Below, one piece after another: positions 60 through 21,200 of a stretch of DNA of 64,000 bases. The stretch comes from Glycera tridactyla. Taxonomy: Eukaryota. Made by a program: the position numbers and the translations under genes. The stretch is taken from positions 46,810,001 to 46,874,000 of the forward strand of contig OZ286471.1 of assembly GCA_965644265.1 (NCBI GenBank). The letters run 5' to 3'. Numbering within the stretch: position 1 is the first letter of the stretch; each line of letters opens with the position of its first letter. Below the pieces are notes generated by a model. That model was not told the origin of the DNA. It was given only the letters and a program-made list of their open reading frames with translations, and did no database searches.

Positions 60-290
60 CAATGGTATGTGATCAGCCCCGTCCAACCACACAGGCACCT
101 ATCACTACCACCAACAGTGACTGTTATATCCCAACATATGGTGGGACAGCTGGTAGCTCGATCTGTATTTTCCCATTCGAGTACAGAAATGTACGATACA
201 CTGGCTGTTCGACGGTGGATAATGGCGAGATACCTTGGTGCTACACCTCAGTATATTATAATACTGACCATCTCTGGGGAAATTGTTATG
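60..290 (+). CDS. Exon 1, FN2-like module, type A
   Basis: tttacag| ... |gtatgt; 231 nt; [10 protein letters not shown]...[22 protein letters not shown]...PWCYT...WGNCY. Confidence 0.92.
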
Positions 291-3200
291 GTATGTTCCA
301 TCTGACTGAAACACTACAGAGAAATGCTGAGAAGCACTCACTGTCAATGGATAGTATATTTGTATCCTCCATCTGATCCCACATGGATTCCTTCATTGAT
401 CTATATGAATATTGAGATGTGCGTCAGATGTCTATTTGATCAACTTCGCTCTACATGAGTGCTCAATTTCATACTGTTACATGGAGAGGAATCATTTGTT
501 TATCACTAGAAATTAGGCATTCATATTTGATCTTGATATCATCTTTGATAAGGATGGCATTGTGTGTTTTCATTTTCCTCATTGGAAATATATACCAGCC
601 CTAGGCTACAGGCAGGGCTAGCTAATACCAGGAGCACAATATACACCATTACTGGAAACACCAATACATTACTTTCAGTAATTTGGATCGCTTCATTGTC
701 CATTGTCAATCACGCTTATGGCTTAGTGTAATCACAGTTTCATGCCAATATTGGGTATTTTCCAGAGGTCATATGTGATGGCAAACAGCCACGGACCTTT
801 GGGACAACGACTGGTAGAGACTGTTGGGTACCAACTGTAGGGGGTACTGCAGGTGCTGCTTCTGTCTGCATCTTCCCTTTCTCATACCGTGACGTGCAAT
901 ACACCAGTTGTAGTACTGTGGATAATGGTGGCTATCCTTGGTGTTATACTTCGTACAACTACAGAGAAGACCATCTCTGGGGCAACTGCCAAGGTTGGTT
1001 TTCACTAGGCTCAGTCACCCTTGATAAATCAGTGCAGTTCAGGAAAGAAAATCATACACACCGTTGAACAGATTTAGCTGTTCATACTTTTATGTGTGCT
1101 TGATTTTGAGCAAAGAACATATTTCCTCTTCGCTTGAATTGAACAGACAGGTCTACGTAGCCGATGTGTAATTATTTCTGGCATGTTCAGTGTGACATGT
1201 ACCACGGCATCAATAAAGATCGGAAGGGATGCTTCAACCAGGACATTGCTAACGGAATCGTAAAATCTCCATCTGCAATTATTGACAGAGGACATCTCAC
1301 AACACAATAATGCTTATCACTCCTGTGTGCCAACAGAACAAACCTACATGATGAAGCAGTTAATTCACACCATATCAAACATATTATACGGATAATCTGC
1401 ACTGTGATCTTGGGGAACCACCAGCTTGTTCAGACCAATATACTATTGAGTATATTTCAAGAAATGCAAATGGCGTACTGTACAAATAGCAGCATACATC
1501 TAGCTAATGGAAATTGACCAAAGATTGCCAACAATGTGATCTGAAGAGGTATTGAATATAGCACAATCGTGTATACTAGGAGTCCGGGATACATTTATCA
1601 TCGTTCTTATACAATCAGACGATGAAAAAGTTAATATGAATATCCAGCTACGGTGAAATGGAGGGAAAAACTACAAATCTCAGCACATGGCATACCAACT
1701 ATCACAAATTTGCAGTAACAGCTTTCCATCACATGAAAGTCTACTCAGCCTGCATACACTGGATTTCTATACATAAGATGGGTGCGATGTTGAGCAATGA
1801 TAACAGGACATCAACAAAGCAGACATAACCTGGACATGTATCAGTGAGGATCCATTCCATGCCAAGATGCTTTTGGTTGGCTGTATTGAACACATAGTGG
1901 TGGCTATGAAATTAAGCACATATTAGCTATTCTAGAATATGTTACTTGATATATGTGACAATTCTGCTAATATCCAATATCGCATCACGAACCTCATCAT
2001 TCCACCTCACAAATTTGATTGTTCTTGCATCCACTAGTACACAATATACCTACTGCTCTATCCCAGCCTAAGAACTTACCCTCATGCATGTTCATGGATA
2101 ATCAGTAAGTTTTCGATCAGGCAGACACAGGCTATAATCCGAAAAGGTAAAGGGTGGTGAAGCCGAAATGCATGGTCGATGTGATTTACAGGGCTTGTAT
2201 GTGGAGAGCCACGGCCAACAACAGTTTCTCGACAGACCACCACAGGTCGTGATTGCTGGATCCCTACAGTGGGTGGAACCGCTCGACAGCCTTCTGTCTG
2301 TATCTTCCCCTTCTCCTACAGAGATGTCCTCTATACCAGCTGCTCTACAGTTGATAACAGTGGCTACCCCTGGTGTTACACCTCCTACAACTACATGAAC
2401 GACCACCTATGGGGCAACTGTCAAGGTAGGGAGAGGTGGCTTTACCCTCCCATCGAAATCATCCATGTTGGTGATTTTCCATCAGTTCTCATGAGGGACA
2501 GCTGTATGAGAACATTCACCCTCGCATTTATCCAATGGGTCACTGATAAGTAGTACTTCATTCGATCCGCGATTTCTCTTAGGGTATATTAATGCAAAAG
2601 ATATCTGTGTTAAAGCGAATGAAGTCCCTTTTCAGTCATGACCCTGTTTCTTCACCAATATACTAATTTCGCTGTTCATAACATTCTCCCTGACATCCCT
2701 ATTCTATCCTTTCATTCGATGTCCCTTTATAGTAGCTCTCCATCTTGATTACAAATCTCTACTACGCTAGAATCTGAAAAATGATCTCTCCATACATATT
2801 CATCCGAAGCATGGCTTGAGTATTCTTCTGGTCTAATATGTTCATATTAGACAAGTTTAGATGGGCCAGAAGTACCCATTATTTCCACTTGACAACCTCT
2901 CTGTTTCCCATTGTCATGTTTCAGGAATCAGACCTATATTTTCTCTCACATCTATGACACAAAAATGATGGAGGGTAAATTTTGGAAGTCTGTTATGTGA
3001 TCTTTGCACCAGACTGGCTGGTATAATAGCGGTTGATCTACAATGTGAACTGTACGACAACTGGCACAATATGCGAGTATCCCTGCTATATGCTATGCTA
3101 GGTGCATGAGAAAGAGCCTGGCATGATGCTTCATCATGAGAAGGTACAAATGTTATCTCTGGTTAGAGTTCACAGGTATTCATGGCAATATTTTCAGAAA

Positions 3201-18200: not shown

Positions 18201-21200
18201 TGTGATTGTGGGGATTGGGCGTTGGTGCTGCTCGGCAGGTGGTGGTAGTGGTGATGGTGGTAGTGGTGGTGGTGGTGGTGGCGGTGGCGGTGGTGCCGAT
18301 GATCGTCGTCTTTGTCTTGGTGCAGGTTGTGTTCGTGAAGGTCTGGGTTATGCTGTTGCTGGCGGTGATGATGGCAGCGTGGTGGTTGTGATGGTGGTAG
18401 ACATCAGGATCGTCACTGTCATCACGACAGTGGCACAAGCTTTCAGTTCGCACTCAATAAGGATGAATAATGGATGGCGATATCATTGGCATGCTAGCAG
18501 GGCTACGTCTCGGACAGGAAGATGAACGACAGGAGATGGTTCTGGGTGCTGAATGGGTATCAAATCAGTGATGAACTAGCCGACCAATGTTAAGTCTTAC
18601 CATGTATCTGTGAGCAATCCCGATTCTGGTGATAATGATCTCAAGGAATCACACCATTGCGTCATTGATCGGTTCAATACTTCTTTTCCTGCCGTGCACC
18701 ACTGCTCTACACTCCTGATTCTACACCACAACAGTTTTGCTGAGCACCAACCAATCGACCATCTGCCAAACACCACCAGTCCAGCCACCATGCTCATGAT
18801 CTTTTTCACTTACAGAGTTGGTATGTGGACGCGGTCCAACGACGGGATCATATGCAACGACAACTAATAGTAACTGTTGGATTCCGACAATCGGGGGTAC
18901 AGCGGGTGAACCATCCGTCTGTATCTTCCCATTCCGCTATAAAGACGTAACGTACACTAGCTGTACATTGGAAGACAATGGGGGCTACCCCTGGTGTTAC
19001 ACCTCCTATGATTATAGAGATGATCATCTGTGGGGCAATTGTGAAGGTACGCTCTCTCTGCGTTACTAGCACTGGTAGGAGCAGTGTATGGCCAGCAAGT
19101 AGCCTTTGGTCAGATGAAGGATTCAGATCGTGCCATTTTGGGTTAAGCTATCCAATTCTGAAACGGTTTGAGTATTCCTGGATATATTTGAGTCATCGGC
19201 ACTATTGTCTGATCACCGTAATATTCATCGTTGTCATCATTGGCACAATTATTGTCGTTGTCGTTCTCATCGCCAATGTCGTCGTTGTAAAGATAGTTGT
19301 AATGGTCATCACATTCTTCTTTGACGTCATCATCGTTGTCGTCATCGTCATCTTCATCTTCTTCAACATCACATTCTTCTCCATCATCATCACTGTCACT
19401 ATTTCAGTCTACGTTTCATCATTACTGGTACGGCATTATGACATACACTAACGAATATCTGTCTATTCTAGCGCTGGTCTGTGATAGGCCACGGCCGACT
19501 ACAGGTTTGACAGGCACGACAACGGCAGCGGACTGCTGGATCCCGGCGGTGGGAGGTACCGCCATTCAGTCCGTCTGTATCTTCCCGTTCGAATACAAGG
19601 GCACCATGTACACAAGCTGCTCGAAAGTCGACAATAGCGGATACCCATGGTGTTATACCTCATATAATTACAGGAACGACCACTTATGGGGTTACTGTCA
19701 AGGTACGGGCTGCACATAGTGAAGCAATTTCAGACATTCATTACCGGTGTTGACCCGGTGGCAAATGTTTGTGATTGCTGAGCATAATGGTTGCCCACTG
19801 ATGACATTCACTTTTAAAACTTATTTCTTCTGTTCTTTCTGAGGATACTATCTGCAGTGGCATCGTCGGAGCACCCGGCGGTGGCGATCTCAGAAGATGC
19901 GTATGAATATATGCTTGATGTTACTGTATGTTCGCGCACTTAAGCATATTGTATGGTCGTGTTTTATGGGCTTGTATGAATATATGTAAGCATGTATGCG
20001 AGGTGAGGGGGGGGGGGGTCAAGGAGTGAGTTTGATGGGGTAGCGTGTGTTTTTCTCCACTTAACACCAAAGACATTGTGTTTTGCTTGTGCTATGAATG
20101 TCCTCGGGAAAGCATGTTGAATATGATTGTTGTGTGAGTGTGTGTGCATATACGTGTGTAATGAGTGAAAAAGTGAGCAATGGGAGTTAGCAAAATCTCA
20201 GTGACTATGAGCACTATGACGACTATCTACAGGTAAGCATATGACACAACAGTTCATTTTCCTTTTTCTCTCTTCTTTATGAAAGAAGTATTCTGTCCAG
20301 GAAGCAGGTAATGAGTAGTTTTTTCTTGGATCCATCATACATGTGTATTCAGAACTGTTTGACAACTGTTGATTGTGAACTGATAAGTAAGTATAGGCCA
20401 ACTATTGGCTGTCAACTGCCTGTTCCTTGTGTTGCACCACTTGTGTATATAAGTATTGAGTGACCCCATTAATCTTATTCTGCATCTTTCAGAAATTGTA
20501 TGTGGTCTCCCGAGGCCGACCACTGCCAATACCGCAACCACCACAAACGCAGGCTGCTATATTGAGACACACGGAGGAACATCTGGTGACTCCCGCTGTA
20601 TTTTCCCCTTTGAATACAAAGGGGTCACTTACACGGGCTGCACAGCACTTGACAATGACAACAGACCTTGGTGTTATACCTCATACAATTACAAAAAAGA
20701 TCACCTCTGGTCTAACTGTCTAGGTAATTATACAAAAGTACTGGCTTGTAGCTTAACAGGTGAAACGTATTCTATGTGGGACACAGTGAAGAGGTGTTCA
20801 TATTACTATTTCCTGTCACATGGTGTCGTAGACACCATATTCAAATGAACATCAATTTAAGATACATTAGTGGAATGTCGAAGTCTATGACATTGTGAAA
20901 CGTAATGTACTATCTATTCAATAAGTACATCTCAACACTATCTTCCGTCTCAATGATTTCATCATCGAAGTGAAAAATATATCTCGTCTAAGTCATGAGT
21001 GGATGATGGATGCGACTGTTGGTGTAAATATCACCTGGGATTATCGAAGTAATTATCGCCTTTTGTCATAAATCAGATCATTCACCCATCAAATACACGA
21101 AAATTGGCAATAGTTGCTCTATATGCATATCAAATCCCCTGCACGCCAACGACGTTTAGGAGGCATTCCATGGATGCTTGCTCTTTTCTTATACCCTACT

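Follow-up and report, generated by a model that had tools for sequence, protein, structure and literature searches.

A near-periodic order of two FN2 bead classes in a giant gene of Glycera tridactyla

Domain repeats usually grow by duplication of several domains at once (PMC1553488). Among the described systems, nebulin with its 7-module units and titin with its Ig and FN3 domains contain one domain family many times under a higher-order period of subtypes. In the kringle IV region of apolipoprotein(a), a small disulfide-rich module from the kringle/FN2 superfamily is repeated in a long tandem array with its subtypes in fixed order, and in the higher-order repeats of satellite DNA the monomer subtypes of a tandem array recur periodically. 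MMP-2 and MMP-9 carry one fibronectin type II (FN2) module per exon and are among the best sequence and fold matches of the modules treated here. The present study concerns positions 60-20723 of a window of 64,000 nucleotides from Glycera tridactyla (the whole stretch of DNA analysed, G000:C32:46810001-46874000), in which FN2 exons of two classes, A and B, follow each other in the order A-B-B.

This segment is an inner part of one very large transcribed animal gene on the + strand, with more than 150 one-exon FN2 beads and Thr/Pro-rich linkers. The encoded protein looks secreted and mucin-like. In the literature we found no account of a giant FN2 array, and no protein of this kind appears to have been described so far. 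The best explanation of our results, to which we assign a probability of roughly 0.6, is a giant transcribed FN2 gene composed of default B beads and specialised A beads, in which A came to occupy every third position by ancient duplication of a multi-exon block. All features are read on the + strand, and negative coordinates denote positions upstream of the window start.

Two exon classes and their order

Regular-expression and frame scans detected at least 45 FN2-like cores on the + strand of the window, the first 22 of them within 60-21506. The array extends upstream and comprises 157 cores in 164 kb (window plus 100 kb upstream), 128 of which form a well-conserved block reaching from ~-91.4 kb to +22.2 kb (window coordinates). 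Exon 1 starts at 60 and exon 21 ends at 20723, and each of these 21 exons encodes one FN2 domain (PF00040) together with a Thr/Pro linker. Exons 1-22 are 210-246 nt long, a length divisible by 3 in every case; they are of phase 1-1 throughout and are bounded by a pyrimidine-rich AG acceptor and a GT donor.

The assignment to FN2 is supported at the level of sequence and of fold. Seven exons tested singly reached 37.7-57.3 bits on the Pfam fn2 model (gathering cut-off 22.2), and the PDB matches of exon 4 include FN2 modules from MMP-9, MMP-2 and fibronectin, with about equal similarity to each of the three MMP-9 modules. An AlphaFold2 model of exon 4, calculated from an alignment of 139 exons, has a predicted local distance difference test score (pLDDT) above 90 at residues 21-75; the first 20 residues, which constitute the linker, are of low confidence (pLDDT 54-63). 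With Foldseek, the model superimposed on FN2 modules of the mannose receptor, fibronectin and MMP-2 with a root mean square deviation of 1.7 A (55 residues). The four canonical Cys and the aromatic core (FPF.Y, WC, Y.D, W..C) are invariant or at least 90% conserved among 139 modules and are held in both classes. Furthermore, the Cys preceding W, Y or F is invariant, the Cys of the linker motif 'VC' is nearly so, and a C-x4-C pattern lies across each splice junction. This additional Cys pair may close the module by a third disulfide, in the manner of a kringle-like FN2. A protein atlas search returned generic FN2 clusters only, with scores not exceeding 0.82, and a word-based protein search with exon 18 gave no candidate among proteins of 42-131 aa. 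In the multi-FN2 protein P0004 of another animal (1552 aa), each FN2 core is flanked on both sides by an additional Cys; with its Thr/Pro/Ser linkers and near-identical FN2 units, this protein is a possible distant analogue of the clamp-plus-linker design.

A preliminary description of this DNA had sorted the first 21 exons by their cores into types A and B. Both the classes and their order are borne out: exons 1, 4, 7, 10, 13, 16, 18 and 21 begin with C[YF] and have a 55-residue core, and the other 13 begin with CW, each at the position claimed. The class order is thus ABB five times, then AB, ABB and a final A, i.e. about seven A-B-B super-repeats, one of them without a B. The motif proposed for type A held for all eight exons in its initial C[YF], whereas the full form THGG.[AS]GDS ... 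WSNC is confined to exons 4, 7, 10, 16, 18 and 21. Exons 1 and 13 are A-like (TYGG ... WGNC), yet they fall inside the A clade described below.

In detail, the A-like exon 1 (60..290, CY, 55-aa core) is followed by the type B exons 2 (766..993), with a Glu split codon at its start, and 3 (2192..2425). The first exon after an A is here called the first B, or B1, and the next one the second B, or B2. The second unit consists of the strict type A exon 4 (3198..3428, THGGSAGDS ... WSNC), the first B exon 5 (3860..4093) and the second B exon 6 (4628..4861); the third of the strict type A exon 7 (5219..5449), which starts with CF, exon 8 (5679..5912, first B) and exon 9 (6362..6595, second B). In the fourth unit a strict type A exon with a short linker, exon 10 (7084..7293), precedes exons 11 (7733..7972, first B) and 12 (10205..10450, second B). 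The A-like exon 13 (10695..10925, CY, TYGG, WGNC) opens the fifth unit and is followed by exon 14 (11597..11830, first B) and exon 15 (15193..15423, second B, 55-aa core). The irregular A-B unit comprises the strict type A exon 16 (16156..16386) and its sole B, exon 17 (16874..17107). The strict type A exon 18 (17807..18037), exon 19 (18816..19046, first B) and exon 20 (19472..19702, second B) form the last complete unit, and the strict type A exon 21 (20493..20723) stands at the end. Exon 22 (21261..21506), of CY type with a 55-aa core, lies outside the segment considered here and closes the periodic zone.

The distance from one A to the next is 3 exons in 6 of 7 cases. When 8 A were placed at random among 21 exons, the result was as periodic in 14 of 200,000 placements. 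We conclude that the every-third-exon pattern is real and, given the divergence reported below, very old. No further or decayed FN2 exon was detected in the introns, including intron 17 of the A-B unit (motif scans; nhmmer and hmmsearch, all E>0.6). In the array upstream, two isolated 3' halves of FN2 exons (...CYTS.N..DH.WGNC), without a 5' half, are present at -76204 and -62498 and are likely decayed exon remnants in long introns.

An assembly gap of 163 N (11846..12008) falls between exons 14 and 15, the two B exons of the fifth unit. It begins 16 nt after the end of exon 14 (11830), whose GT donor is intact, and therefore lies within intron 14. We placed contigs of four public sequencing runs, which we guess to be RNA, on 11597-17200, a check that covers exons 14-17. 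An 8348-nt contig of run X1 joins exons 14, 15, 16 and 17 directly at 11830|15193, 15423|16156 and 16386|16874, all with GT..AG borders, and two contigs of run X3, which belongs to a different study and bears a different organism label, contain the same joints. Since three introns are removed exactly, these contigs represent the spliced form, and because they join exons 14-17, the order and the reading frame are continuous across the gap and no used exon lies inside it. They also bear on the question whether the array might be a set of exons used alternatively or in mutual exclusion, as in Dscam, not all of which enter one protein. As all exons are of phase 1-1 and multiples of three in length, any of them could be skipped without a frameshift; however, the consecutive arrangement of exons 14-17 in contigs of two studies makes such a cluster very unlikely, this holding for that part of the zone and allowing for rare isoforms.

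The X1 contig also contains a second 141-nt piece reported to be identical to the exon 17 core (window 16935-17075), about 2.1 kb more 5' in the transcript. This is approximately where exon 8, the sister of exon 17, is expected. It may be an artefact of assembly, reflect a copy difference in the animal concerned, or represent a conversion tract. Two introns contain tandem repeats. A minisatellite of 135 bp in 8 copies with 95% identity (9106-10178) makes up much of the unusually long intron 11. Intron 14 (12345-14588) carries a repeat of ~170-182 bp in 7 copies (12606-14108) and a CGTC microsatellite. The intron 14 repeat was covered at a depth of 100-760 by many short contigs in all four runs; in view of this very high depth it is a common repeat family of the genome, and probably a transcribed one.

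Type A as a gene-specific subtype

In a careful maximum likelihood (ML) tree of 22 exons, the eight A exons and exon 22 were grouped with 90/97 support. A careful tree of 128 exons grouped the eight A exons with six upstream exons bearing the A signature and two further A-like exons (83/92). The A exons consequently stand apart from the CW-type exons, as the preliminary description had expected. Type B is not a clade and is the default bead type of the whole array.

The strict A signature consists of His27, a one-residue deletion at column 33, Asp34 and Ser75; all four features are shared by 12 of 12 copies, compared with ~0 of 110 other exons. In addition, Glu42 occurs in 9 of the 12 copies, and Trp never follows the first Cys. 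For Ser75, eleven copies use an AGY codon and exon 21 uses TCT. The switch of codon family in exon 21 argues for selection for Ser rather than mere inheritance and points to Ser75 being held by selection.

A search of the 2.04-Gb genome for the back-translated motif T-H-G-G-[ST]-A-G-D-S gave 11 occurrences, and none in the reversed control. All 11 occurrences are located inside the FN2 gene, between -88.0 kb and +17.9 kb (G000:C32:46722011-46827906), and exon 21, which has one variant residue, is the twelfth copy. The six upstream strict A copies are found at -88001, -85070, -69213, -64658, -44457 and -35148, at irregular spacings of 5, 8, 6, 23 and 12 exons. Type A is a constrained, gene-specific FN2 subtype.

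The A-specific columns 42 and 75 each adjoin an invariant aromatic residue (F41, Y43, W74). Judged by known FN2 structures, these aromatics may line the ligand pocket, so that A and B beads would bind differently.

A further class mark lies at the exon junctions. Every intron splits a codon that is composed of the last G of one exon and the first two bases of the next, and this codon is located between the last FN2 Cys of the former and the 'VC' Cys of the latter. The split codon is Glu after 11 of 12 strict A exons compared to 30 of 109 other exons (Fisher p 2e-5), e.g. at 3428|3860, 5449|5679 and 7293|7733. In the window, an acidic split codon precedes 7 of 7 exons right after A but only 1 of 6 second-B exons (p 0.005), which is the sole difference we found between the two B positions. 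The residue belongs structurally to the preceding A bead. Because the Glu codon tracks strict A, the class of a bead is encoded in part by the first two bases of the next exon. The mark is consistent with an A exon having been duplicated together with the start of the next exon, or alternatively with selection on the A bead.

Two smaller groups of exons were noticed beside types A and B. To a minor subtype with a 55-aa core and the motif CWIPAVGG belong exon 20 and four exons upstream (-85767, -75355, -43877 and -36711). Three of the five, namely -85767, -43877 and exon 20, directly adjoin a strict A exon. Between about -35 kb and -16 kb, exons with a GGTA[LF]P[TR]S loop occupy alternate positions and are grouped in the tree; their introns are unalignable.

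Age of the copies and origin of the order

Four-fold sites of homologous codons are 30.5% identical, compared with the 26.3% expected from base composition at saturation. In about 86% of the pairs the synonymous distance dS, estimated according to Nei and Gojobori (NG86), either reaches 3 or more or is undefined; the nonsynonymous distance dN is 0.19-0.28. Where dS is defined, dN/dS amounts to ~0.06-0.12, indicating strong purifying selection on every exon. The preliminary description had dated the duplication far enough back for the introns to have diverged, and the near-saturated four-fold sites and the mostly very high or undefined dS agree with this. It had further noted by eye that the exons are conserved while the introns lack similarity between triplets, a contrast that was confirmed by blastn. 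Since silent sites are saturated, the similarity of the exons is due to protein-level constraint alone, and such constraint in combination with saturated neutral sites explains why conserved exons alternate with unalignable introns.

Homologues in other organisms were sought by a profile-free search with exon 18 against 1.84 billion representatives. It gave multi-FN2 proteins of 35-46% identity and single-exon open reading frames (ORFs) of 61-72% identity. The former were rejected as orthologues, being only 35-46% identical. The single-exon ORFs were found on short contigs of a single metagenome (ERZ23486739 / JAAUYI01) and are one-to-one orthologous to particular exons of the present gene. 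They are not paralogues within the G. tridactyla genome, since the genome-wide motif search finds no such copies there. The orthologue of exon 21 exhibits 86.7% protein identity compared to 73% for the next best exon, and that of the strict A exon at -64658 exhibits 81% compared to 76%; both have kept the full A signature. For the exon at -18745 the values are 95% and 83%, and several other exons have orthologues as well. One contig of the relative contains a B exon (-65403) followed by an A exon (-64658) in the order found here, with an intron of 581 nt (511 nt in G. tridactyla), and a second one contains the exons -19268 and -18745, again in the same order. These two conserved adjacent pairs are the exons numbered 30-31 and 89-90 in the upstream array. 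The contigs of the relative measure 1-2.5 kb, and none links two exons of the A-B-B zone. Between orthologues, dN is 0.04-0.13 and dS ranges from 1.4 to undefined, and the introns are unalignable. Judged by these sequences, the single exons and their class are older than a very deep split, and so is their order where it can be seen. Just downstream of exon 21 in the relative (contig positions 430-800), the last exon codons and the donor region, with a stretch of 14 residues, are repeated three times in tandem.

The same data bear on the possibility that ongoing gene conversion (concerted evolution) keeps the exons alike while the introns drift, in which case the array could be young. This would account for exons that are 60-77% nucleotide-identical next to introns that share nothing. 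Conversion of this kind would, however, erase silent divergence and one-to-one orthology. As the silent sites are as diverged as unrelated sequence, and as exons have one-to-one orthologues in a relative with dS >1.4, it is practically excluded.

More weight has to be given to the idea that the spacing itself is functional, A beads binding differently from B and selection keeping them two beads apart, with the history of duplication being secondary. Although silent sites are saturated, the A signature persists in copies separated by as much as 108 kb and in two orthologues from the distant relative; two of its positions, 42 and 75, are next to invariant aromatics of the FN2 core, and no more than one unit in seven is irregular. 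On the other hand, the six strict A exons upstream are irregularly spaced, which implies that the function of A needs no period of three. We regard functional spacing as possible, though a good deal less likely than an origin of the pattern by block duplication. Somewhat more doubtful still is an extended form of this idea, according to which A is a distinct FN2 subtype, unique to this gene and with an identity that reaches across the exon junction, and the two-bead spacing is a conserved molecular ruler, older than the deep split, for periodic binding on a giant secreted mucin-like fibre.

With regard to the preferred explanation, an ancient block duplication, the expectation was that the exons would form clades A, B1 and B2 with a period of three. 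Only A groups; B1 and B2 do not form clades, and a considerable number of further results weighs against the copying of three-exon blocks. Nucleotide identity is 0.695 for B1-B1, 0.696 for B2-B2 and 0.694 for B1-B2 pairs, and the corresponding dN values are 0.191, 0.176 and 0.189. No alignment column separates B1 from B2 (p 0.16-0.40), as opposed to the separation of A from B (p <0.001). The distance matrices of A, B1 and B2 gave no sign of congruent unit histories (Mantel r 0.20, -0.37 and 0.12), nor was there extra within-class similarity at any lag from 1 to 15 exons (family-wise p 0.30). In the 128-exon tree the B exons of the window are scattered among upstream exons, with well-supported branches dividing them into at least four groups, and the A exons of the window are not set apart from those upstream. 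The protein identity of window B exons to W-type exons 50-100 kb upstream is 0.698, compared to 0.703 among themselves. Comparison of the 21 window introns gave only two short minus-strand blastn matches, and that of the 127 introns of the wider array only 7 short ones. The nulls on block duplication have to be read in the light of saturation, which alone would give all of them, so that they neither refute nor support the model. Whether three-exon blocks were copied is no longer readable from the DNA.

Three candidate results were discarded. A quick ML tree of the 128 exons proved unreliable, the constrained tree being better by 40 log-likelihood units, and was replaced by the careful search. 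Two apparent B subtypes in the 22-exon tree, one marked by TTTN..CT.EDN and the other by a motif of 10 letters, track B1 and B2 only in exons 10-21 and not in exons 1-9. A 12-exon period, suggested by the A-like exons 1 and 13, had no support from lag-12 similarity.

The trees could also be taken to indicate that blocks were never duplicated and that the period arose stepwise, by single-exon duplications or by conversions of single exons to A. The best-supported partners of window B exons lie outside the zone, being the exon at -36711 for exon 20 (95/87) and the one at -48368 for exon 14 (95/83), and the near neighbours exons 9 and 11 are sisters (100/89), without congruence at the level of units. 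However, a single clade of all window B exons was not rejected in the approximately unbiased (AU) test (p 0.22), and hence the trees cannot decide the history. A periodicity at a chance level of ~7e-5 is furthermore hard to reach by independent events, and the class mark on the first codon after A would need a second coordinated change each time. We therefore regard a stepwise origin as improbable.

A few observations point to co-duplication. Exon 7 pairs with exon 16 in the 128-exon tree (86/67), and the exons on their right, 8 and 17, likewise form a sister pair (99/98). At a site where the upstream strict A exons have Phe, those of the window mostly have Tyr. Growth of the array by duplication of a three-exon block, as put forward in the preliminary description, is plausible but unproven. 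Block duplication remains the most economical origin of the periodicity, with support limited to the order and the class-marked junction codon. In this reading, a block of several exons, either A-B-B or a multiple of it, would have been duplicated in tandem long ago, when its two B exons were still nearly alike. Later loss of one B would have left the irregular A-B unit, and selection on each bead may have frozen the order while the genealogical signal decayed.

Comparison with known repeat systems

The beads of this gene are not all equivalent, one gene-restricted subtype being placed at a near-perfect period of three under strong constraint. The array is a clean case of a repeat architecture that has outlived the neutral traces of its origin, exon identity and order having survived the randomisation of introns and silent sites both between copies and between species. 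The four A-specific positions and the class-specific residue encoded across the splice junction provide handles for asking what the two bead types bind.

The preliminary description had compared the A-B-B triplet to the three FN2 modules of MMP-2 and MMP-9 and proposed that it may be a functional unit. This part of it could not be upheld. Two of the three positions are equivalent, the linkers of ~20 residues are flexible and of low confidence in the model, the beads number more than 150, and strict A exons are spaced irregularly upstream. The MMP triplet is a compact insert in a protease domain, whereas the window holds only FN2 exons, strung on those linkers, and the resemblance is in the number three alone. 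In nebulin and titin each position of the super-repeat is of its own kind and matches a periodic partner filament, whereas in the present gene only one of the three positions stands out, and the domain is FN2. The KIV-2 units of apolipoprotein(a) are near-identical, recent and variable in copy number, in contrast to the anciently diverged copies of the present array, which have kept their exon identity in a distant species. Satellite units, finally, are homogenised and nearly identical, whereas the units described here have no detectable neutral similarity to one another.

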